From Phaeosaccion multiseriatum (Eukaryota; Protista; Ochrophyta, other classes), in the NCBI GenBank assembly GCA_965112735.1, contig OZ218960.1, forward strand, positions 1,302,001 to 1,366,000: a DNA stretch of 64,000 nucleotides. The letters run 5' to 3'. The notes under the pieces were generated by a model that made no database searches, was not told where the DNA came from, and saw nothing but the letters and a program-made list of their open reading frames with translations. Shown here one piece after another: positions 9,660-54,451 of this stretch. The stretch's first letter is position 1, and every line of letters starts with the position of its first letter. The position numbers and the translations under genes are program-made.

Positions 9660-12162
9660 TTACACCTCCTTGGCGAGAGCGAGCGCCGACAATGAGCCAG
9701 TCCCACTGCCTCTGCTGAAGTGAAGGCTGTCTTCTTCCCCACCCCCACCATCAGTTGTGTCGTCTGCGCTCCTGCCTTGCCCAGGCGGGAGTAAGTCACT
9801 CCAATGCGTCGCCATTTGGCGCACGCCTTTCTCGTCTTCAAGCATCAGTCCGACCACCCCTTCGAGCTTCAAACCCTGACCCTGACCCTGCCCTTGACCC
9901 TGGCCCAGACCCTGACCTTGACCCTGCCCCTGACTCTGACCCTGATCCTGACTCTGATCCTGACCTTCACTACTACAATTGGATACACCCTGCTGGAGAG
10001 AGCCTTCGGAGAAGAGACTGAGAGAGTGGCTCGATCGGGTGACTTCTTGGCGCGAAACCGTTACGTGCGGCAGTCCTGATGTGACCATGGCCTGAAGGTC
10101 TAGACCAGCAGAGCTCTGGGCAAGCGTTGCAGCAGCAGCAGGTGAAGGAGGTGGATGAGGAGGAGGAGGAAGAGGAGGGGGCGGAGGAACAGTAGCAGTA
10201 GCAGCAGCAGGAGGAAGAGTGGGAGGAGGAGGAGGAGGAGGAGGAGGAGGAGGAGGAGAGGCAGACAGGGAGACAGGCAGACAGGCAGACAGGCAGAAAG
10301 CAGACATGCAGAAACGAATAAGGAAAGCAGGGATTGTGGATGATTGTCATTCGGAGCTGCGCTACAGTCTCTGCGTGTGAATGCCTGGTGTCCGGACGGT
10401 GTGCAGACGTGGACTCACCTCTGCGGTGCTGCTCCTCTCCTCCTCTCGGAGGGCAAGGGTGACGGCAACTGCCTGGGCCTGCTCATCGGAAACGTGCCCA
10501 ATTGCGGTCAGGTCGACCACCGCTCCCATGGGTAGGGAAGGGCATTCAGCCCAGGGGGGCTTGTAGGCCAGAGTGACGTGATCGGCGCAGCCACTGAAGA
10601 CGGTGTGTAGCGGGCGGGACTGCTCAGGGGGGGGGGGGGGAGAAGAGAGGGGAGAGGGAGGTGGAGAGGGGAGAGGGGAGAGGGGAGAGGGGAGAGGGGA
10701 GAGGGGAGAGGGGAGAGGGGGGAGGGGAGAGGGAGAGCGGGAGAGAGGGGCGAATCAGCCCACGATACCCATAAGAATACATGTAGTTGATGTGTCTCAA
10801 GCCCAACCAGAGGCAAAGACACACAGATTTCCCACCCCAACCGAGGGGAAGCCGATTGCCTCTCCTACCCACCCCTGCCTCCTTGCCTGTATCACCCTCC
10901 CTGCCTCCTTGCTGTATGGTACCTTTGCCCAAGCCTACTTCACTTACCCAGTCGAGCAAGGCTTGACGAGACTTCTCCGTCAGAAAGACAGCGCTGTACG
11001 CCACATGCAGCCCCCTTCCCTCCGCCGCCTGCCCGAGCTCAAGTAGCGCCGCGCTTGAAGTTGAAGTTGAAGTTGAAGACGAAGTCGCTGAGGGTGGAGC
11101 TGACGATGTTGGAGCCGCTGAAGCCAACAAAGGAGGTGAAAGTGTGGGAGCGGAAGGCGGAGGAGGTGATGGCAGTAGAGGAGATACGTGTGGAGGAGCT
11201 GCTGCTGCTGTGTTGAGCAGCGACGCCTCTACGCGGTAGAAGGAGTTCGGCCGGCGACCCTGCATGGCGCACAGGTGAATGGATTCCACCTTTTGGTAAC
11301 CCAGTGGCGGTTGTCGGCCTTCTCCTGCTCCTCCTGCATTACCAGCTGCTGCTACTGCTGCTGCTACTCCTCCTGCTGTTCCTCCTGTCCCTGCCTCTCC
11401 TCCTCCTACCGCCCCTCCTGCTTTTCCCCCACCCTCTCTTCCTGCTGCTGCTCCTCTTCTTGGAGAGGCCATATAGTGCAATAGTGAAGCTGGTACGTCT
11501 ATAGTGCTGATGTCATCGCGTGCTGCGCCCTTGAGCTGGGAAAGCTTGCATATGGTCATGTGAGGCTCGTAAGGGTCTCTGTTGCCAGCCAGTCCTATAC
11601 CCTCCTCTCTCATCCTCGCCAGTAGCTCCGCCACGAAGCTCTGCAGACGGGGAACCCCGTTGGGCTGAGCGTGCAGCACAGACCGCCCAAAGAAGCCCAT
11701 TCCTTCAAAACGGAACTCAAACTCCCGAGAGAGGTACTGCCGCAGCAAGCCTTCACTGCCCCTCAATACGTTGCTTGCCGTGCGGATCGCAGCTTGACTC
11801 CGCAGCTCAAGCACCGCCAGCGTGATGTGCAGAGAGTGAGGGTCCGTTGAGGCGTCGCTCAGACGCGGGTCACCAGCCACCAGCTCGCTCTGGACGTACT
11901 GTACAGACTCGATGAGGGCAGGATCTGTGATGCGAAATCCGATAAAGTGAGTAGGTCGGCTACCGCCGCCTCTCGCCCCCACCCGCCCCCTCCATTGTCG
12001 CCGGCCGCTTTGGCCCCTTACTGCCATTTCTCCTCTCCCTCCTCGTCCTGTTTGCGGCTGGTCTCTGACTCTTGCCCGCCCGCCGCTTGTGCTACTCGCT
12101 CCTCCCAATGGTGGTGCTCCTATCCGATCCTTTCCAGCTTCTTGTCTCCACCCCTCGCTCAT
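9660..12162 (-). CDS. Protein with two 2H-phosphoesterase domains (AKAP7/LigT-like plus a second, CPDase-like domain)
   Basis: Domain 1: RPTHFIGFRITDP..LHITL..EPHMTI (AKAP7-type). Domain 2 after the intron at 10947: YSAVFLTEKSRQALLDW|SRPLHTVFSGCADHVTLAYKP..GHVSDEQAQAVAV ... LPHVTVS. Start is ATG 12162 or the upstream ATG 12393. Confidence 0.75.
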
Positions 12163-12510
12163 CCTTTTCCTCTTCGTCTTCTTCTCCCCCACGCGGGGGA
12201 GCTTGGCAAGGGGAAGACCTCTCGGGAAGGACGTCGAAGGGAGCGGCCAGAGCAGGCGCAGGCAAAGCCAAAAGGGCAAGAAGCGCGCCGAGCCTGCTCT
12301 GCTTCTGTACGCCCTGTACACACTCCCTCTCAATCTACCCTTTCGCTCGCGATGTGAGCTGAGGCGGGGGCACTGGGACCGGCAGCTCCTCATCAGGGGA
12401 ATAAAGAAGGGAGGAAAAAGTAAAAGAGGGACACCTTTTGATCATCGATGATCGCATCGGCGTACGCCAATTTGTATCACCAACTCCCCTTTCATTTTTC
12501 TTCACTTCCT

Positions 12511-24582: not shown

Positions 24583-27500
24583 TCAGTTGATGAAGATGGG
24601 CCCAAGCACAAGCACCGTTGTGGAGAGCAGCTTGATGACGACGTGCAGGGAAGGACCTGCAAACCAAACGAAACAAGCAAGGGAGGGTAGGTAAGAAACA
24701 CAACCAAACAAGGGAGGGTTGGGTTGGATTGGTAAGCGTGAGGTGTCGTCGTTTGACCTCCATACTCATTAAAACAAATGGCAAAATCGACCTTTCATAT
24801 GACCAAAATCGTTCCCAAAAACCCTACCGGGACAAGGGAGGGTTGGATTGGATTGGTAAGCATGAGGTGTCGTGATTTTTTTCAGGGACAGAAGGGCCTG
24901 GGTATAGATAGATAGACCTCCCTCACCCCCTCCCTCCCTCCCTCCCTCCCTCCCTCCCTCCCTCCCTCCCTCCCTCCCTCCCTCCTTGCCTGCTGTGTCC
25001 TTGAAGGGATCTCCCACGGTATCCCCTGTGATGGCCGCTTTGTGTGCCTCACTGCCCTTGCCTCCATAGTGACCTAACTCTACCCACTTCTTGGCGTTGT
25101 CCCAGGCGCCCCCAACATTATCCATGAAGAGCGCCATCATGATGCCCGAGACTGCTCGCGGATGGCAGCAGAAGACAAAGAGCAAGGGCAAGGGCGGGCG
25201 ATGAGAGAAAGAGGCCGACAAGGAGAAGACAGTGGAAAGGAGGGAGGGAGAAGGAGGAAGGAGGATCGAGAATCGGCCAGCCAGCGAACGAACAGGGAAG
25301 GAAGGAAGGGTGGAAGGACACTACTCACCCGTCGCGAACATGAGGTAGCTCGCCAGACACTGGGCCCCCAGCATGGGTCTGTCTGTATGGGCCCCCACCA
25401 CCCGAAAGGTCAGCCCTGTGGCAACGGGCATGGCCACGCACAGTACGCCCGGGAAGCGCATCTCCTTCAGGGCGGCTTGCGTGACGAGCTCCACACACTT
25501 ACGGTAGTCAGGCTTGCTTTCAAAGGTCAATATGCCCGGATACTCCTTGAATTGCCTCCGTACTTCGACCACCACCTCTCCTGCTGTCTTGCCCACTGCG
25601 GCAACGGCCAGGCCTGTGAACCAAAAGATCATCATGACTCCGAGGAGGCCGCCTATTAAGATCTCAGGCACAGCGATGTCCACATGTTTAAAAGGTTCGC
25701 CCGTGAATTCTTTAGAGCCGGAGGTGAGGGGAGGGGGCGGGGAGAGGGGGGCATGGAGGAGGGAGGGAAGACGCAGCCAGAGAAGCGTAGGTAAGTGTTG
25801 GCAGTGGTTAGAGCTTTAGCAGCGGCATCGGCGGTTGGAGGAAGAGGAGGAAGAGGAGGAGGAGGAGGAGGAGGAGGAGGAGGAGGGGGAGGAGGAGGAG
25901 AAGGAGGAGAGGAGGAGGAGGAGGAGGAGGAGGAGGAGGAGGAGGAGGAGGAGGAGGAGGAGGAGAGCTACCCACCACTAAATTCATCCATGAAGGCCCC
26001 GAACAACAAGAAACATGCGAGCGAAGCGCTGGCGATGGAGTACCCCTTGGTTATAGCCTTCGTGACATTTCCCGCCGCATCAAGCCTATCCGTTATGTCC
26101 CTTACTCCCTCAGGCTGCTGTGACATCTCAGCTATTCCTCCTGTGAAGCGAGAGAGCGGACGAGTACAACCAGCGACCACAGTAGTCGGAAAAAAGAGCA
26201 AGCAGCAGCAGCAGCAGCGCCATCAGGAGGGGGAGGAGAAAAGCAACAGATGGCATAAGGTGAATGTGGAGGCGGTGGGGCTTGCAGGGCGGGCAGCAGA
26301 TGAGGCGGATATACACAGATGGAAGAGAGAGGGGTGGCAGTGGATGGCACAGGAGATCAGAGGGATGGTAGTGGATGGAGCAGGGGATAAGAGTGACGGC
26401 AGGGGATGGAGCAGGAGGTAAGAGGAGCAGTCATACTCGGGGTGGAGCGGTAGACCACGGTGGGGGGGTAGGGGCACACGCTTTCCTCTCTCTTCCTCGG
26501 GCTATTACCTGCGTTGTCGGCTATCGGACCGAAGTTGTTCATCGACAGGACGAACACTAAAGAGGTGAGAGACAAAACGTAGGGGGTTGGGGGGATGGGG
26601 AGAGAGTTGGGGGTCGGGCAGGAGGTCTGCTGTCCCAATGCATGCGCCCCATCTCCGTATCAGGCGCACAGCAGCCAACACACATACAACACCTACACGG
26701 GACGGCACTGTACACCCACCCACCTGCGCATGAAAGCATCCCCATCGTGGCTACTGCGGTACCAAAGAGGCCTGCATTGTGGCCCGACCCAACTCCACTG
26801 GTGCGGCCAAGGTGGTAGGCGACCAGGACGCCAACTGAAACCGTCAAGCAAGGCACGACCGTGCTCTTCATGCCCACCGCCACACCGGTGATGATGTTGG
26901 TGCCGTGGCCTGTGGTGCTCGCCTCTGCGATGCTCTGCACGGGCCAGTACTTGTAGTCTGTGTAGTACTGCGTGCTGAGGATGATAATGTAGGCGGTGAC
27001 CATACCCGCCAGTCCACAGCCGGCAAAATTCTTCCACGCCCCGGGCACGCCAGGGACGTCCAACAACCACTTCGTCAGCCCCACAAACCCCGCAAAGCCA
27101 CACCCACACGCCACTCGGTAGCCCCTCGTCAGCTGCTCCATGGGATCGGCACCGCCTCCTCCTCCTCCTCCCGCCACCCCTCCTGCGCCCCCTGCTCCCC
27201 CTCCCCCCCCTCCTCCTCCGTGCCCTCTGCCGACCACGTAGATACCAATGCCGCTCACAATGAGGTCCATCGCATGTACACAGACAGGGAAGAGCATAAG
27301 GCCCAGTGGGCTCTCCAGCCCAATCTCGCGCGCCAGCGTCGAGCCGAGTATCATGGCCCCAATCATCTCTGCTGCGATGGATTCGAACACGTCAGCTGAG
27401 CTTCCACAGCAGTCGCCAACCATGTCTCCTACAAGATCCGCAATCGTTGCCGGATTGCGCGGGTCGTCCTCAGGGATTGAGTTTTCGACCTTACCAACCA

Positions 27501-28404
27501 AGTCGGCACCGACATCTGCGGCTTTGGTGTATATACCGCCTCCCAGTTGCATAAAGAGGGCCACGAACGACGCTCCAAAGCCGTACCCGACCATCAACAC
27601 GGGAATGTCTGTGCTCTCCAGCACCCCTCGCCACACGTACCACACGTAGAGCGACACGAAGAGGGACGCCACCCCGGCCACGCACAGAGTAATGTCCAAC
27701 ACTGCTGAGAAGGCTCCTCCCCTGAAACACACCACGAGTGCCTCTGCGTAGCTGTAGCGCGCAGAGCTGGCCACCCGAATGTTGGTGTGCGCGCTGACCC
27801 ACATGCTGACATAGCCCGCCACGGCAGAGCACGCTGCACCGATGAGGAAAGACCAGCCCCCGAGCAGCCCCATCTGGGTGTTACCGAGTGCCGTGACATG
27901 ATTACTCTTGGACTCGGGTCGCAGCACAAAGCTCAGGACGATGAATGTCATGACCACGGAAGCAATCTTGGCAATGGCAGTATACTGTACCTTGAGGAAG
28001 CCTTCCGCACCCTCCCTGATGGGATCTGCCACTGCTCTCATCTCCTGGGTGCCGTCGTCCATGCTCATGACCGCATCGCAGAGGTACTGGGCGAAGACGG
28101 CCCCGCCCATCACCGTGCACATGACAAGGACCATAGGGTACACGGTCCGGGGGAGCAGTAGTAGGAGCAGCAAGCCTACACCTAAAATAAAGCCCATACA
28201 TTTGCGCGTGTCGAAGGGCAGCCGGATAGGGGGCCGGTGATAACTCTTTCCCTTTGATACGTCCCCACGAAGCTCCCCACCTCCCCCACCGCTGCTGTTG
28301 CTGGTACCGATGCTCCCGATCCCACCCATCTCTGGGTCATTGTTACCGTAAGACACTGCGTTGCTGCTGTTTCGCCTGTTCACACCTGGACTCTGGTGCC
28401 GCAT
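24583..28404 (-). CDS. Membrane H+-translocating pyrophosphatase, type II (AVP2-like, K+-independent)
   Basis: [57 protein letters not shown] (Lys at the K+-dependence determinant), [25 protein letters not shown]|PSLHVVIKL. Stop TGA at 24583-24585. Confidence 0.95.
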
Positions 28405-31648: not shown

Positions 31649-32513
31649 TTACAAGCCCTCCGCTTTCTGCAAGGCTGTGCTGCCCGCGGCATGTCTAGAC
31701 CTTCGGGAAGCGGACCTTCTCCGAGCATGTCGCCTCCTCCTGTCGGCCGGGCTCAGATCCGCTTCGGAACTGTTGGTTGACAATCGCTGCTGCAGAACGG
31801 TCACTTTGAGCATGTTCTCCACATCGTCCAACGTCTCGTCGTCGTCGCTGCTGTCGAAGAAGGCTTCCCGTTCGTCACCGCGCCTCCTTCCCCTGGTCCT
31901 GCTGCTGGGGCTTCGCGGGGAAGCGACTCTATTACTACTAGCCTTGCAGGCCATTCTGTGCTTCCTATAGTCTTGCCTGCTTGTTGCGGCTTCCCCCTCC
32001 TCTACGTCGGCGTATACGGAGGCCCGCCCTCCTCTGCCTCCTGCTGCTGCTGCAGACGATGCGCCTCCTTTGCGCGCCGTCTCAGCTCCTCGATTGACGC
32101 TGGGCCGTGGTGATCTGCCAGAGAAGGCTCGTCCGTTACCGTCGCCGACACTTGGCACCACTCGAATGCGGCTGCTGCTGCCAGCAGTAGTCGCCGCCCC
32201 GCTTGGTACAGAACTTTTCGTACCACCAGCTCCGTGACTATCTCCTGCTGCCCCCGTACTGCTCTTCTCATCCGCCCGGCTGCGTCTACTTTTCGCTTTG
32301 GCCTGCTTGATCTTCTTCTCCTTCGCCAGATCCGCTCTTCGCTTGTCCACGCGGGTACTCATCAGATTCACGCTCAAGCGCACATTGACGATAAAAGTCC
32401 GATACCACAAAGTCCGCATGAGTTTCCGGGTAGGAGCGTACCTCTCGCGGTCCAAAAGCTGTACGCACATAAGGACACACACACACATACACACACGCAC
32501 ACACACATACACA

Positions 32514-32562
<49 letters not shown>

Positions 32563-33229
32563 ACGCAGAGGAGACGACGTCATTGGATTCTTCCGAAAAG
32601 GGGAGATGCAGAGCTTAGAGCAAGACAGTGCGACAACAGCGACGAGTAGCTAAGACGGACCTTTCGCTTCCTTTTCAGCTCAGCCTTTTGCTGGTCCTGC
32701 TTGGCCTGGTCAATCTTGTACGTGGGAGCACAACGAATAAAAACCTATACCCGTTCATGGGAAAGAGAGGAGGGGAGAAGAGGGGACCAGCAAGAGCAAG
32801 ACAGGCGTTGAGGAGATGAAGGTGGCCGTTGGGGCTGAGTCTAGGCACCCAGCAAGGCCAGCAGTAGCAGCAGCATGAGTAGCCAGGTTACGGAAACCGC
32901 CGAGGTCCCGAAGAAGCACTTCTCTCCTTGAACGCACCATAAGGGACCAGAAGGCCTGCCTGCCCGTCGTGAAGCCCATGTCCAAGTACAGCAGCATCAC
33001 TGGGAAGGAGTGGATGGGAGGGACGAGGGAGCGATTCATTTTGTGTGAGACTGACAAGGGCAAGCGAGTAGTGAAGAGTGCACACGCACACGCACACACG
33101 TACACACACGCACACGCGCACACGCACACACACGCACACACGCACACACACACACCCACTCATACACACATACACACACATACACACACATACACACGCA
33201 CACACACATACACACACATACACACATAC

Positions 33230-33270
<41 letters not shown>

Positions 33271-36200
33271 CCGGTGATGGTCAAGGTCAGCATGCTCATG
33301 GAAATCATGAGAGCATATACTTCTGCGCTGAGGCTATCGTCAAACTGTGACGCGACGAGCAGCCCCAGCGTCATGCAGTTACACAACACGTAAAAGCCCT
33401 CCACGACGTTGGCCAGTAGGTTGTTAAAGGGTCCCACCACCGCGAGGGCCACAAGCTCTCCTAAGCCGCAAACCAAGAAGATGAAGGACGTTGCCTGCAA
33501 AAGCGATGAAGGGGGATGGAGGGCAAGGGCGGGTGGCAAGGTGAGAGCCACTCAGCGGCAGCGAGTACCGCCATGTCGAGGCGACTCTCCCCCTGCTGGC
33601 GCGCTGTCAGCAGCCAAGCAAACGCCAAGAAGCAGCGGAGGATTGTGGGCGCATGTCCTATCCTGTCGCCTGCCTGGCGTCCTTCCTCCCCTCTTACTCC
33701 TGCTTGTACGCCAATACAGTACCTTCGTTTCTCCCACTGCCCCCGCCACCACGCCCAGCACGAGGCCTTTGGCCAATATCACGAGAAGGTGCTTGCTTCC
33801 CTGTGAACACATCCACCAGGCGGACGGACGGACGGACGGACGGAAGCGCAACACAGACAGCACAAACGGGGTGAGGAGTCAATTCGTGGGATACCGCTTC
33901 ACTGAGGCCCTGAAGCCCTTCGCGCCCTCCAAGCCGAGCAAGCTCAAGCCATCTATGACGGACCTGTCGAGTGTACTCAGAGAAGAGGGGCTCGTAGCCA
34001 ATGCGCATGCGGCGTAAATTGATACGACTCGTTTCGTTCGCTTTGGTATGCCACTCCCCCCGCGCGGCCCTTGTACAATAGCCGGAAGATTGGCACCGAA
34101 GGAGGGCAACAGAAGCCACAGGCGAGGTGGGAGGGAAAATGATCGTCTCTTTAGACAGAGGGGTCGCAGATGAAGGGCCAAGCTGGTGATGGAACGATAG
34201 AGAGGGAGGGAGCGAGAGGACAGGACACAGCTGGGGAACGGACTTACCAGGTAAAGATGGATGTTCCTTCTTTCCATGCTCGCTTGAGCCCTCGCCATGC
34301 CCTCGTTCGAAGAGGCATGTTAAGACGCTGTTCCCAATTGAGAAATAGGGGTTGTTCAAGGGAGGAAGGTGGGGGGTGAGCGAGACAGAGACTCTCGCCT
34401 CTGCTGTCATGCTTCGCAGTCGACTGCCGTAGCTACGGAATGAATTTGTTCAGCAGGCGTTCCCATCCCCATGTCCCGCTCTTGCAGACGGACTCTCTTT
34501 GCTTGAACTCACTCACCACTTGGCGCTGGTACTCCTCGTAGTTGCGGTAGACGAGAGGAGCCGATTCGGCCACCACCTGCACAGGAGGAGAAGGGAAGGA
34601 AAGGGAAGGGGAGGGGAGGAGAGGTGAGGGAAGATGAGACTGCGTGAGGTGAGCGAGGCAGGGGAACACCATTGGGGCCCGAAGTGGGCGACACTGCGCC
34701 ATTCGTCTGATAAAAGCTTTGGCCGCAAGGAGCGAGGGCTTTCTGGAAGGCTGCCCTAGGGTACTCACCATTCGATGGATAACATTGTAGATGCTGTAGA
34801 GGAGCAGCACAGGGAAGCAGAGGAAGGACACCAAAGCCATCGCGGAGATCTTGGGGCAGCTCCCCCCTAGCACAATTGCTTCGCTCTGCCGGTGCATGGG
34901 CGTGGGAATGAGTAAGAGGCGGGGTCAAGAATGGGATAGCCCAGCGGTGATGTCCAAGCTCCTCTGCACAAGCGCTGCTTACCTGAGCCTCGACGGCCCC
35001 CTCGAAGCAAAAGAGAAGCCACAGTATCTCGATGTGCTGGGAGGTGCAAAGGGCACAGCAAAGGCGTGAGAGCCCGACGAGGACGCAAACATTGAGGGTT
35101 TCAGGAAGGGAGAAAGAGAGAGCAGCGCCGTCTGCTCGCTACGCACCGGGATGTAGATAAGGTAGTGAGGGTCTCGGCGCATCAGCTGCAGAACATGCGC
35201 TGTAGTGACCACATTCGCCTTTGAGTCGGCCCTTGCAACGGCTTGGGCATCAAAGCCGTCTTCTTCATCCTAAGGTGCGTGGTGAGGGGAAGGGCGGGAC
35301 GAGACGCGAGTTGTGATCAGAGGCGAGCGACGCTCACGTCAACATCAATATCGAGAGAATCGAGAACGTTGTGTCAACTCCTCCGCCGCCGCCCTCAGCC
35401 AGTGGGGACGATTCCCTAAACTCATCTTCAAACCACTCTCACCATACTCGTTCTCCTGACACCCAACTTGTCGTGGATGGCTCGGGTACGCATGAGCTGC
35501 TCCTCGTTCTTGGTCATTTGCTTGGTGCGCTCGACGGCGAAGATTGCTGCCTCTCGGTGGGAGATCCAGAGGAGATGCACAAGGATCAGCACCAGCAGAA
35601 GCCCGAACACCTGAGGACGAGCAAGAGAGGCGAGGGACGATGAAACGCAGGAGGGGGCGAAGGTCAACTCTATGGAAGACCAGCAGTCGAGCCGACTTCC
35701 CTAAGCTCATCTTCTGTACTTCGGGGGCACACAAGAAGCTGTACTTGCCATCGTGAAATTGCCCAGGAATTTGTTAACGCTCTCCCGACCATCCTCGTCC
35801 AAGTTGCTGCTCACAGGAAGGAAAGAGAAGGAAAGGGAAGCCACGCATGTACAAGTGAGTTGGGGGAGGCCAGGGCGCCAGGCACGTGGTCCGTTACAAA
35901 AGCTCAACCCAGAGAAAGGACAGTGGGGCAAGGACACAAGAGACAGACAGGCACCATTCTTTTATAAAGGATGACAGAAAGTGGAGGTGATGTAATTCAA
36001 GTGTTGCTCTCGCAGGCATCATCCACCATCACTGCGTGGAGGGACTGCAGCTCGTGCCACACTCACGTGCACACGGTCGGGAACGACACGATTCCCCACA
36101 GATTGAACTTGTCGAAAGACGCCGCTAAGGCCCCAAAGCCGGGCAATCTCGCCGGCTGAGAAGGGGGAAAGAGAAAGGCAGAAGAAGGGCCGTGTTCAGT

Positions 36201-39200
36201 TCGTTCGTCTGTTCGAAGGAAGTGTAGTCTCGGGAGCGGGGCGACGAAAGCTGTGATGTTGGTAGCGATAGCTGAAAGGCTGCACTGAGCCAACGCTTCG
36301 ACCGCCCATGACTTACATCCGTGACTTGGCCTAGCAGTGACATCATCTTGATCTAAGAAGCCGCGTGCGTAAAAGTATGTGCGTATGCGAAGCGCGAGCA
36401 GCGGGGGCAGCAACGAGAACGGCATCAGTGAGGGAGTGGGCCTTGGCATGCTGACCCTGCTCGTCCTTAGGGATATGAAGCCGTTCACAAATCAAGCTAT
36501 CCCTCCTCTCCGGCTTCCGTCCCAGTAGTCGTCTCGCGGGGTGCCAACATGCCCCTCCCTCCCCGCACAACGAGTGACCTGCGCCTTACCTGCCCGAGCA
36601 TGAGCCACGATGTGGACGATGAGCCGGACCGTGCACTGCCGTCGCTGGTATTGGTGGCCGTGCTCCCTTGCTGCTGCTCCCCTCCACCTACATCGGCGCC
36701 TTTGCCAGGATCGGCCATTCCTCCATCTGCTCCGGTGGTGGAGTTCGGCGCCCCTCCCCCGCCTCCGCCCCCTCCGCCTCCGCCCGCCCCTCCCGCCCCC
36801 CCGCCCCCTCCCCCTACCGCGGCCGAGTTGGTGCTTGCAGCAGCGCTGCAGCCCCCCAGATGCAAGAAGGTCCGACCCACACGGCCAGCGAGCGAAGCAA
36901 GTAGACAGTGAGTACTACGGGAGACAGGGGTAGGGAATAGAAACACCCTGACATGGAATGACCGGCAGCTCTGGCCCCTCGTTATAGTGCGGAGGGGAGG
37001 GGAGGGGAGGAGAGGGGAGGAAGTCTCTGGAACCACACCAACCCACCAACCGACCCGCCCGCCCACCCACCAGCCCACATACCCACCTTGCGGACGAGGC
37101 GGAAGCCGACGCCGACGCGGAAGCGGTCGTGGCCGCTGCGGATGCCGTAGCCGTAGCAGTAGCCGCCGCGCCTCCAACTGCGACACTTACTGCCACCGCG
37201 GCCGTCGTGCCCAGGGCCTCCTCCACCACCTGCTTGGGGGGCGGGGCTGGGGTGGGCGCGGGGGTGGGGACGTCCGTGGTGTTGATGAAGGTGAAGTCCG
37301 TGGTCACGTGGACGGTCGGAAGGTCCACGTCCACCCCAGTGATCGTCAGGGTGGAGGTGGAGGCTTGCAGGACCCACGAGGACAAGATTTGCCGGAAGGC
37401 CGAGGTGTTGGACAAGCCGTCCAGAATGGCCTCGGCTGCGGCGTTGGGTGTGTCTGAGAGCAGGTCGGCGGTGTTGTATGTGACCTCGGCCGTGTAGTTG
37501 AGCAGGTAGGAGCTGGTCAGTGCAGACACTGTCGATGGCTCCGCCGAGAAGAAGGGCAGCTGGACGGTCGGAGTCGAGTCCACAAAGGTGGGCAGCGATG
37601 CCCCGAGAACAAATAGCGTGCCGTTGTACAGCATCTGCTCCACGGTGGAAGCATTCGCGGACAGGCCTGCGCAGGAGTTGACGAGCACATGCGAGTAGCG
37701 AGTCGGCGGTAAAAAGAAGTAGACAAGTCAAGAACAGCGAGGCTCTGGGGGCGGGAGGTTGCCAAAGCAATGCTTTGTGCGCAAATCAGGCACACGGGTA
37801 CGGCGTTGTCGCCAGTGGGTCGCTTCGAAGGAGGTAAGTTGAGAAATTGATCGGATCGGACCAGGTCCCTGTGAACAGTGCATACCTTCCGATGAGAGAG
37901 CTCGCCGCCCGGATGTAGTGCTGTTGCCGCTTGTCGTGGAGTTGAAGGTGACAACAGTCCAAAGCTGCTGACTAAACGATGTCAGAGCTATAGGTGCTGG
38001 CGTTGGAGCTGCTGTTGCGGCATTCTTTGGCACGGCTGTTGGAGCTGCCGTTGGTGCTACTGTCGGAGCTGCTGTTGGGGCAGCTGTTGGGGCTACTGTT
38101 GGAGCTGCTGTTGGAGCTGCTGTTGGAGCTGCTGTTGGGGCTGCTGTTGGAGCTGCTGTTGGGGCCATTGTTGGCGCTGCTGTTGGAGCTGCTGTTGGGG
38201 CCATTGTTGGCGCTACTGTTGGAGCTGCTGTTGGAGCTGCTGTTGGAGCTGCTGTTGGAGCTGCTGTTGGAGCTGCTGTTGGAGCTGCTGTTGGAGCTAC
38301 TGTTGGGGCTGCTGTGGGTGCCTGTTAGATACACCCCATGCAGCGTGCGAAAGTTAGTGAGAAGCATGGTGGAGGAGGCCACAGAGGGGCAACAAAGCAA
38401 AACGAGGCACACGCAGGTAACCCTCATCTTCGACGGAGCAGCAGTAGGCCCCTGTGTAGGCGCGGCGGTCGGTGCCGCTGTCGGTGTCAAGGTGGGGGTC
38501 TGGCAGATGATGACACAGAAGGGATAGTGTGAAAGGTTGGTACGGCATAGATAGTTGGACACAGGCGAGGCAGGCAGACGAAAGCGGTTCGGGAGTGTGT
38601 GCCCGTGATCATCGGGAGGGCTGCGTACCTGAGTTGGGGCCAGTGTCGGAGCGGCGGTTGGAGCAGGCGTAGGCGCCGCTGTATCAAACGCGAAGTCCAA
38701 GCCGCCCGTCAAGGGAAGGTCTGCTGCTTCTTCTCCAACGTAGAGGTCAGCAGTTTCCAGCCCAAGCTGACCGCTGCGAGTAGAGCCGGTTTAGGGACAA
38801 GCACGCGGTTGGTTAGTGCTGGCCCGAACGAAAATGACGAGAAAGCAAGGCCAGCCTTCGGCCGGGTATCCCGAGTATGTGGTTTATACACAGCGCTGCG
38901 TTCCCACTCCCGCACACACGCAACACATCGCATGGCCTAAAAGCTCGGGACGGGGCCCTTCAGCATGGGGCCCATCCCGTCTGTGTTTGCTCATTCATTA
39001 CCTATCGTTACTTCCCCAGCACACGAGCTCCTCAGTCGTCTCGATGACCGCGCAGAGCCCTTTCTCTCCCACGCACAAGCTCTCTGCAATGCCATCACTA
39101 CTCGCGCCAAAAGGAACAGCGTCCAAGTTGTCGCCCATTTCACCAGTGCCGTCACCTATATTGGTGGTAGACCCAATGGCAAGTTGACCTGGTCACGTTG

Positions 39201-42200
39201 GGGCAGCGTCGCAAGTGGAAAGCAAGGAAAGAGCCGAGAAGAGTGCTGTCAAGCGCCGCACTTTGGGGTGGGGCGAGCAATGCGAAGCCCTTTTCATGTC
39301 CCTCGTCGTCATCAGAAGCAACCGCACGTACCGTATGTGTTACTTCCAAAGCACTTCACCGCTCCTGATGGGAATGCACAGCACATCAGAGCGTGAATGA
39401 GGGAGGGGGGGGGGGGCGTTGGTCATTCTTTTCAAGGAGGCCAAGGAGGCCACAGTCAGTCCGGAAGCCGAGCGGTGCTAGCCAAAAAGGTATCGGGTGA
39501 GCCAGAGCCCTCCCCAAGTCGCGACCAGAGCTGAACGCGTACATACCGTTCTCGAAAAGTACACACGTGAACTGTTTTCCCGCGTGTATAGCACTTGGAG
39601 TGAGGCCAGTGCCCAGATCCAGGCCGCTCTGTTGAATAGAAGAGGAGCCAGGCAGTAATGTAGAGGCACAGCCAAGGAGAGCGAAATTTAGAATCAGCTT
39701 TCCTGTCCCCATCAAAGGCCAAGTCTTGACTTCGCCCCGCTCCCTGGTTCCTCCACCTACCATGTTTGTGGGGCTCGTTTCGTCGTCTTCCAACCCGGTT
39801 CCCAGAGCTCCTGAGAAGAGGAGGAAAAGGTTGTGAGCCATTCGAGGATTTGAATAGAAGTCCGACACTTGATCGATGGCAGGCATGCTATGTAGTGTCC
39901 TCCTCTTCTCGCCTAATGCATTCCGCTTCGCGTGCGTAAGTGCTTACCGTCGTCGCCTCTCCCCCAGCAGACCACGTCCTTGTTGGTGCTATCCGTATCG
40001 TTCTGTCGAATCTGTAAGTACGCGGCATCGTCAAGGGGGCAAGAATGAGGAGGATGGCAAGGAAGCGGGCTCGAGCAGACCCAAGGAATGAATCTCCCCA
40101 CGGAATCTCCCTGCAGGCAAAGCACAAGCTTCGCTTACCACGCATGTATGGTCATAGCCTGTAGCGAGGGCGATGGCTGTGGTGCCAGCACCGACGTCAA
40201 CCTCGGCCAAGCCATCCCCCATCTCAGATGCCAGTGTTCCAAGCGTATTGTCCACCCCGCTAGTGCCGATGCCCAGCTGTGGTGTGAGCAAGACAGTGGG
40301 AGAGGGAGGAGGGCATTGATGATGAGGGCATGAGCTCATACATGCCATACGGAGATGCTCGCACTGGCTGGCTGGGCTGGTCATCTCCTCACCTGGCCGT
40401 AGGTGTTGTCTCCCCAGCACGCCACGTTGCCCGTGTCCAGAATCTGTTGGAGGTACGTGCACAGGAGGATGACGATGATGAATGAATGCATGCACGTTCG
40501 TCAGCTCGGGCAACAGGGGGCAGACAGTCTCAGGAGTGACGGAGCGATATGTAAGATGACCACCCTCTGTACTGATGGTCTGCGACCCTCGTGCTCCCTC
40601 CATATCTTCCTCCAACCACAGGAAGGTGGCGACAGGCAGGAAGGTACTTACCACGCACACATGCTCCTCGCCGGCAGCGATCGATGTTGCTGTCCTTCCA
40701 GTGGGGAGCTGCACAATCGTCATATCGGCCATCGATTCACCAGAAGAGCTCGATGCCCCAAAGGTGGCCTCCGTACTTCCCTGCCCGCACTGTTACGGTA
40801 CGTCCACAAGAGCGAAAGCGGTGCCTTCGTCAATCATCTGTGTGCAAGGGGGTTGATTTCCGCAGCTACCAATACATCTCTCCCCTGGGCTGACGGACAG
40901 CGTGCGAAGTACCTACTCCCTGCTGTGCTCACTCACCTGTCCCTTCCCATTGTCGCCCCAGCTGCGCACGGCCAAAGACAAACACGAGTGGGATGACGAG
41001 AAAGTGAGAGGAGGGCCGAAACAACAAGGAAAAGGCCGGACAAGCAGCTGACAGTCCAGGTGGAGAGAGAGAGGCAGAGGTGAGCGGAGTAGTCAGAGAG
41101 ATCATCAGCAGCGGCAGGTCCTTCCCCGCAGAGAAAGTCAAAGCAGGATATTACCATTTCACGTTCCCAGATGCCAGCAGCGCACAGTTCACTTGCTTCC
41201 CGCTGGTTATCTGTATAGCTGTCTCTCCCAGATCCACTGCTCATTCGAATGAAAGCGCGCAGCAAGGATCAGAGTTGGAAGGAAGCACGCGGGTCTCAGC
41301 CAGCCATCAGGGAGCTGACGGCAGCAACAGCAGTAACAACACCAATGGGAGAGCCTTCCTCAAAGGCTGAAGGACAAACCTGCCCCTCACCGCCGGTCAG
41401 AGCACTCAGAATGATCAGATTGAGATGGCAACCGAAAGAGCACAGAATGAAGGGCGGCCTTCTTACCTTCACCCAAGCTGTCGCCCTTTTGAAGCCACAC
41501 AGCAGCAATTCAAGACAACGGGAAAAGAAAGCACGTGTTTCAGAGGAAAAGGTAAGCACGGAGTATAGTAACTGACTCAACGGTTGGACTGAGCGCTGTG
41601 GACAGGACGAGACCCAGATTGCATCCCGCCACGTAGCTACTCACCATATCCGAGGCGTCCTCCCCTCGGTCATATGTGTCGTCCTGCAGGCACCAACGAG
41701 GGAACAAGACAAGCGATAGAGTGAAGCCGCATATACCACAGTCTACTCAATCTCCGTAAGCCTCCCCTAGACCCAGTACGGCCTGCCCTCTCCTACCTGT
41801 CCCAGCTGCCCCTTCGCATTCTTCCCCCAGCATTTTACCCCCCCTCCGGCGGAGCCAAGCTGTTGGACCAAAGAGTGAGAAGGGCACCAAGCCAGCAGGC
41901 AACGAAGACGCAAGTACTGAATTAGGCATGCTACAGCCGTGGCTAGAGGCTCTTGTGCCTTCTTACCGCACATCCGCCGTGATGCGAAGCGGAGATTTCT
42001 TGGGCACTGAATCCCGTGCCAAGATCAATCGGATTCTGTCCAGCAGGGCGAGGGAGGGGGGCACGTGTGCCAAGCAAGCAAACAAGAAGGGCACGTTAAT
42101 ACAAAGACTCCACCCGCCCTATACCTCCAGAGGTAGCCAAGAGCACAGGCAGAGGAGGCGAGGAAAGAGGTGTGGCTGGGCTCCCACCGTCAAGGCGAGA

Positions 42201-42629
42201 ATGTCGTCCATCTCGCCAGCTTCATCCCCCAAGTCTTCAAGGGTGTCCGTGAGGCCTATCCCCAGAGCACCATAGTTGTTGCTGTGCGGACAAGCACAGC
42301 AGAGCGACAGGGGACTGGATGTGTTTAGAGGGACAGATATGCATGATGCTTTACACTGCTTGGCTACATGCGTCCACCTCCTCCTGCCCTTGGCTGCTGC
42401 CGATACCCTCTGCTTAAGTGCTTCTGAACCGAGGCTTCTCCTCAAAGACTCACCTCCCCCAGCATTGGAGTACTCCAGAAGGAGTATGCAGGACGCATGT
42501 GCCTTTATGGTCCGCTGCACACACCACGTCCCCAGAAGCAGCCTTCGCAAGCCAAAACCGCGTGCCGCCTTGGAGCAAAAGATACGCCCACCACAAAGCT
42601 CCTCGCCACGCTCTCTCCCTGGGTGCCAT
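31649..42629 (-). CDS. Receptor-like surface protein, copy A: signal peptide, 7 RCC1/BLIP-II repeats, (TAAP)n stalk, glycosylated spacer domain, multipass TM domain, basic cytoplasmic tail
   Basis: Mirror of copy B. ATG 42629; last exon in ORF 31649..32554 ending LQKAEGL*. One intron donor is mutated GT>AT at 38427. Confidence 0.75.
37998..38321 (-). repeat. Coding 12-bp minisatellite, (PTAA)n mucin-like stalk of copy A
   Basis: Units of ttggagctgctg on the plus strand; 60 bp longer than in copy B. Confidence 0.9.
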
Positions 42630-42643
42630 GTAAGAGCAGCCTC

Positions 42644-42988
42644 CTGCCCGGTGAAAGAGTAAACTTCCACCCCACCAAGTTTTCTCGTTTCTCATCCATG
42701 GCACTAATGCACTAATGCTTTAAGACCGTCCACGATTTTACTTTTGCATCGATCCGCAGTCAAGGGTAGTTTCAGTTTCAGTGTCGGGGTGCACTCTAAC
42801 TTGCCGCCTGCTCCTAAGCCCCACCACAGGAAGCTCAGTTTGGGGCCCGTTGCGGTCTTGTCCTGTCCCTTCGTGCGTTCAGTGCTCGTACGTTCAGAAG
42901 GAAAAGAATAATAAGTCAGGGAAGTTTGTAACCGTCAGACCCAGCCATGGTCCTGTAAATTGGACTGGATCGTACGTAACAGCCGGCA
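42644..42988. promoter_or_regulatory. Unique 345-bp palindrome spacer; inferred shared bidirectional promoter
   Basis: The only unique DNA between the two divergent ATGs (42629 and 43003). More AT-rich than the exons; contains gcactaatgcactaatgc. Confidence 0.55.
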
Positions 42989-43002
42989 GAGGCTGCTCTT
43001 AC

Positions 43003-54451
<11,449 letters not shown>

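Follow-up and report, generated by a model that had tools for sequence, protein, structure and literature searches.

A probable old gene palindrome with unlike ends of a 345-nt spacer between two start codons in the alga Phaeosaccion multiseriatum

The gene palindromes of the primate X and Y chromosomes, such as P6 of the Y, have a unique spacer flanked by two inverted arms, each of which bears gene copies. The identity of their arms is upheld by arm-to-arm conversion in tracts of several kb, and inversion of the spacer or an arm is a rare outcome of crossover (PMC3723533; PMC8327919). In human P6, the conversion tracts averaged 2 kb, and the longest exceeded 9 kb. There were 56 conversions against 3 inversions, and inversion occurred at about 1.4-1.7e-5 per generation (PMC3723533).

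Shorter pairs also evolve in concert. The paralogues of the AttA2 (Attacin) pair of Drosophila subobscura, arranged head to head around a central spacer, are older than their sequence identity suggests, having been homogenised by gene conversion, and the inverted Hsp70 pair has been cited as a similar case (PMC7584159). The silkmoth chorion A/B pairs are head-to-head genes with a short common 5' region, in a family under gene conversion (PMC4639761). In the MAT flip-flop of the yeasts Ogataea polymorpha, Komagataella phaffii and Ascoidea rubescens, homologous recombination between inverted repeats of about 2 kb turns the enclosed segment around and changes which gene is expressed (PMC6692504).

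The locus described here belongs to a known kind, the gene palindrome or inverted paralogue pair evolving in concert. It has the inverted arms, gene copies and unique spacer of the primate palindromes, and the head-to-head paralogues of the AttA2 and chorion pairs. As in the yeasts, inverted repeats flank a segment. The window, the whole stretch of 64,000 nt that was analysed, covers positions 1302001-1366000 of a contig of the P. multiseriatum assembly (67.1 Mb, 22 contigs). The genome is about 58% G+C, and its introns are of the GT-AG type.

A repeat search placed the inverted arms at 39651-42643 and 42989-45981, with 100% complementarity and 345 nt between them. Alignment of the full arms gave no difference over 2,855-2,856 nt from the centre. 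The first arm difference (PSV) was at 39788/45844, 2.86 kb from the spacer, and beyond it the divergence was about 3%. The start codon of copy A is the reverse complement of 42627-42629, with the gene starting at 42629 on the minus strand, and that of copy B is at 43003-43005 on the plus strand. The start-to-start interval, 42629-43003, is 375 nt (Table 1).

Table 1. Positions of the features of the palindrome and its surroundings in the window
Feature	Position	Strand	Remarks
Copy A, whole gene	31649..42629	-	RCC1-like repeats, Pro/Thr/Ala stalk, TM-like segments; divergent last exon ~31649-32461
Copy B, whole gene	43003..54451	+	Last exon ~53735-54451; (GTCT)181 in last intron, 52982-53705
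Exon 1, copy A	42453..42629	-	59 codons, signal-peptide-like, ends at GT donor
Exon 1, copy B	43003..43179	+	Identical to exon 1 of A
Leader of copy A, 14 nt, common to B; inner end of left arm	42630..42643	-	
Leader of copy B, 14 nt, common to A; inner end of right arm	42989..43002	+	
Spacer between start regions, unique, 345 nt	42644..42988	.	Single copy; no Rfam match
Inner tract, left arm, no difference from right	39789..42643	-	Arm alignment
Inner tract, right arm, identical to left	42989..45843	+	Arm alignment
Family-type 5' flank element, copy A -45..-15	42644..42674	-	Homologous to same positions upstream of P5, G000:C1:4384227-4384249
Neighbouring exons (left flank, ordinary gene context)	26557-28404, 10624-12393, 152-1456	-, -, +	

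The earlier note on this DNA had claimed that arm identity stops sharply at 42643/42989, 14 nt before each ATG. The arm alignment and direct reading both bore out these end points for perfect identity. Similarity, on the other hand, did not stop there but ran on past -14 for about 10 nt in degenerate form (7/10 with a 1-nt indel; CACCGGGCAG vs CAGCCGGCA). Beyond about -25, the similarity between A and B was not above that of shuffled controls. Since each ATG lies inside the inverted repeat, the equal distances of 14 nt follow from symmetry and represent one observation, not two. The arm differences that the note had singled out as diagnostic, 39788/45844 and 38427/47206, were both real in the alignment. 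Also as claimed, the short unique spacer met copy A with one end and copy B with the other, and the asymmetry went deeper than first noted, as described below.

A search of the 67-Mb assembly returned the spacer only once, even with the threshold relaxed to E<=10. Its G+C content was 51%, compared with about 58% around it. No significant internal inverted symmetry was detected in it, and an Rfam search of the palindrome centre gave no match. GGAAGTTT and CCATGG were present on both sides of the spacer, in swapped order.

The two genes are members of a multi-copy family, with at least six others elsewhere in the genome: P1-P4 on contig C7, P5 on C1 and a decayed copy, P6, on C14 (G000:C14:1094960-1097900), which contains stops. 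The ATG is conserved at the same place in P1, P4 and P5, and is followed there by a signal-peptide-like exon ending in ...QCWG(R/T) at a GT donor. Judged by this conservation, the predicted ATG of A and B is the family's own start codon. In P2 and P3 (G000:C7:1632066-1632250 and C7:1647022-1647200), the exon-1 ATG was out of the conserved signal-peptide frame across a G-run, owing either to a genuine frameshift or to an error in the homopolymer.

The predicted proteins would consist of a signal peptide, an RCC1-like propeller, a Pro/Thr/Ala stalk, several membrane spans and a charged tail. A Pfam search with 20 exon-sized pieces gave only weak matches to RCC1_2 (PF13540). Exon by exon, the best of them scored 15-17 bits (E 0.005-0.02), short of the cut-off of 22. 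The motif C/S-W-G-x-N/D-x-x-G-Q recurred in six exons. TM-like windows were present in at least four later exons, and the tail was long and charged. ESM Atlas was uninformative on the largest exon, with scores below 0.8. A 12-nt stalk repeat, coding for Ala/Pro/Thr/Val units, was present in about 26 copies in A (38002-38315) and about 21 in B (47318-47571). The stalk thus differs in length between the two proteins, besides the tail.

One splice donor also differed. A small stalk exon has the donor GTGAGG in B (47206), where A (38427) has ATGAGG, a change of GT to AT. In copy A, this exon may be skipped or extended and, because of the lost donor, the predicted gene may now be failing. An apparent premature stop in A at 35272 (50322 in B; C>T, CAG to TAG) was rejected. 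The change stands directly before a block conserved in all paralogues, and most likely affects position -3 of a 3' splice site. The exons on the left flank encode, in the order of Table 1, an H+-pyrophosphatase (PF03030, E 3e-114), an AKAP7-type 2',5'-RNA-ligase-like domain and a DUF202 protein.

Copies A and B were 94-100% identical along about 10.9 kb, introns included, whereas either was 66-91% identical to the paralogues. The differences between the arms were mostly substitutions (more than 170), with few indels. They were unevenly spread: none fell in the inner 2.86 kb, whereas the divergence was about 3.2% between 3 and 5 kb from the centre, about 0.3% between 7.5 and 9 kb, and 5-7% between 9 and 10 kb. 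The identity was thus arranged in kb-scale patches, of 1.5-3 kb. Within the inner identical tract, 1,518 of 2,841 nt, or more than half, lay outside the blocks conserved as coding. This extension of identity over sequence not conserved as coding cannot be explained by selection on the protein. Since the A/B blocks take in the ends of introns, the counts of 24 non-synonymous against 6 synonymous changes in them cannot be relied on.

The arm homology ran to 32651/52955 and then continued beyond a microsatellite in each arm, an (AC)n run in the left one and the (GTCT)181 array in the right. Past these microsatellites, the identity was 93% at 32312-32461/53735-53884 and 65% at 31700-32076/54069-54409. 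The (GTCT) array of B is perfect and lies directly upstream of the acceptor of the last exon, where copy A has the (AC)n run (32462-32567). It roughly marks the fading of homogenisation between A and B. The same tetranucleotide array was present at this place in P1-P4 and P6 too, although the tails there have dS of about 0.5-0.9.

The last exons were far less alike than the rest of the genes. They were 65% identical in nucleotides, and B was no closer to A than to P1, P4 or P5. The tails were 46% identical in amino acids, a distance like that of either copy to a paralogue on another contig. Between the last exons, dS was 0.61 and dN/dS 0.55, and both tail ORFs were intact, with 238 codons in B and 270 in A. 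A tree of the tails placed A, B and P5 at equal distances, with terminal branches of 0.38-0.51 and no settled branching order among the three. An attempt to phase the ancestral flank with the ancestral tail by tail phylogeny gave nothing, owing to this equidistance.

With dS of 0.61 and equidistant tails on the one hand, and arm divergence of only 0-3% on the other, we interpreted the pair as old, with a body that has been repeatedly homogenised. The kb-sized patches, which take in introns, are the signature expected of arm-to-arm gene conversion.

The two ends of the spacer were compared with the 5' flanks of the paralogues. At positions -45 to -15, copy A matched the flank of P5 at 20 of 31 ungapped positions, while all unrelated pairs gave 5-14 and copy B gave 6 against P5 at the same positions. 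In an end-anchored alignment of -130 to -15, A against P5 gave z=5.6, and none of 300 shuffles was as good. By the same alignment, B had no significant match to any paralogue, and A had none further out than -46. A genome-wide pattern search with the A/P5 consensus returned only the A and P5 sites above the reversed-pattern control. This indicated homology rather than a common promoter motif, a homology at -45 to -15 that rests on one paralogue, P5.

As the A/P5 flank match had no significant counterpart in B, copy A, by these alignments, retains the proximal 5' flank of the family, and the family homology of B appears to end at about -14 to -25. A genome search for the source of the spacer end at B gave no match, even at E<=10.

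Upstream ATGs were also present. That of A, at 42698-42700 on the minus strand (-70), and that of P5, at L016:1691-1693 (-76), both stand in register +1 with respect to the main ATG, and each, if transcribed, would give a uORF overlapping the main start. Copy B has instead a 3-codon uORF at 42947-42958 (ATGGTCCTGTAA). No in-frame ATG further upstream was found for B.

The spacer is presumably the divergent promoter and 5'-leader region of both genes. It most likely acts as a short divergent promoter/leader for the two, with a different regulatory input at each end; the unlike ends make a difference in expression possible and no more. The description "asymmetric shared promoter", given by the earlier note, is a fair one of the anatomy, with the promoter activity itself presumed.

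We consider it likely that the locus is an old gene palindrome, the arms of which have been kept alike by arm-to-arm gene conversion. The observations agree with this in several respects: inverted arms of high identity (about 10.9 kb), a single-copy spacer, and arms too alike for the age of the duplication, introns included. The history would have begun with an ancient inverted duplication, the inner breakpoint of which on the B side fell some 14-25 nt ahead of the ATG. A breakpoint there would have left copy A with the proximal 5' flank of the family, and copy B would have acquired unrelated sequence. Since then, repeated conversion from arm to arm on a kb scale would have held about 10.9 kb per arm at 94-100% identity. 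The sizes of the tracts are like those of human Y palindrome P6 (PMC3723533). The latest tract, with 0 differences over 2,856 nt, would have reached the point where homology ends. The non-homologous spacer would be closed to conversion, which would also have failed to reach the greater part of the last exon, past the microsatellite of the last intron, so that the spacer ends and the tails stayed different. The tails could, instead of being old, have become unlike through ectopic conversion by other family members.

This history was weighed against a technical origin of the structure, in which the inverted arms would be a fold-back mis-join, or their inner identity the result of consensus homogenisation in assembly or polishing. 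Polishing might indeed leave such an abrupt change in divergence, from 0 to 3%. However, a fold-back would usually be expected at the end of a contig, with a turn of a few nucleotides and with differences due to read errors only. Here, the locus was 1.3 Mb inside the contig in a window without N, the loop was a 345-nt non-palindromic single-copy sequence, and the arms differed by the substitutions and few indels counted above, each joining its own unique flank. The tails, moreover, were anciently diverged intact ORFs. Homogenisation by mis-mapped reads should hit the whole arms rather than the inner part alone, and its restriction to the inner 2.9 kb is unlikely. We regard either kind of artefact as very improbable. 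An unlikely alternative of a biological kind is that only copy A is properly transcribed, B being promoter-less and looking intact only through conversion from A; in view of the donor loss of A, the roles could also be exchanged. Copy B is without the conserved element at -45 to -15, and conversion can mask decay in the arms. On the other hand, the last exon of B lies outside the converted zone, and is still open over its 238 codons, with dN/dS of 0.55 at dS of 0.61, which speaks for long-term expression of B. B has therefore very probably long been expressed from its non-family end. The tail of A is intact too and, with both tails under mild constraint, both spacer ends have probably driven expression.

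A crossover between inverted repeats always inverts the intervening sequence. The inner tract, perfectly identical over 2,856 nt, is a sufficient substrate for this. A crossover within it is mechanically possible, and would invert the spacer, so that the two ends changed places with respect to the outer arms and tails, which have diverged. The earlier note had raised on this ground the possibility of a eukaryotic flip-flop expression switch. In such a switch, the spacer would be inverted often enough, within a culture or population, to exchange unlike promoter ends between two receptor variants with different tails, and the exchange would be used by the cell. Consistent with it are the substrate around a short asymmetric spacer, the different origins of the spacer ends, and the differences between the genes in tail (46% of amino acids identical), stalk repeats (26 vs 21) and one splice donor. 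Inversion between inverted repeats is, besides, an established switch in yeasts (PMC6692504). The proposal nevertheless found no support in the window. A single orientation was observable in the one assembly, and neither silencing context, recombination machinery nor any other hallmark of a dedicated switch was found at the locus. Exact-product look-ups for two ORFs of the window returned no independent copy of the locus, and metagenome pattern scans with the spacer core and a degenerate exon-1 motif returned no match. Palindrome recombination, where measured, was mostly conversion, as in the P6 counts above (PMC3723533), and the yeast switches move genes beside silencing chromatin, a context not evident here. 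We thus find the switch highly doubtful. There is equally little to recommend a toggling of the spacer at a frequency visible in long reads, by which the family and acquired promoter ends would be re-assigned between variants with the same ectodomain and different tails. Such toggling, if true, would represent a recombination-based expression switch in an alga, and a spacer inversion that changed expression would extend flip-flop switching beyond yeasts. Under the preferred reading, an old palindrome with arm-to-arm conversion, any inversion of the spacer would be an occasional by-product of the same recombination and not a switch.

New at this locus are the age of the pair, the apparent conversion of its arms, and a spacer with one ancestral and one acquired end. 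The known systems differ from it in several ways. In the yeast MAT flip-flop, the invertible segment is 19-138 kb, compared with 345 nt here, and the MAT locus is placed beside centromeric or telomeric silencing chromatin, a context not known at this locus. Both orientations are documented in the yeasts, compared with one orientation in one assembly here (PMC6692504). The silkmoth chorion pairs consist of two gene types and not of inverted copies of one gene, and therefore have no inverted repeats able to flip the promoter.

The arms of primate palindromes extend from 10 kb to over 1 Mb, whereas those found here were about 11 kb and their spacer only 345 nt. The present palindrome is an algal locus with no known sex-chromosome context, and its arm identity is patchier (94-100%). 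It also differs in having the spacer directly between two start codons, from which we infer that the spacer is the promoter region itself. It would thus offer a clean non-animal, apparently autosomal case of a long-lived gene palindrome.

Compared with the AttA2 pair, the genes are intron-rich and far longer. Conversion here appears to end 14 nt short of the ATG on one side and within the last exon on the other, so that promoters and tails remain unlike. It would have homogenised all but the promoter region and the cytoplasmic tail, giving copies with a common ectodomain that are able to differ in regulation and signalling. Beside the AttA2 and primate cases, the locus should be useful for the study of concerted evolution and its limits.
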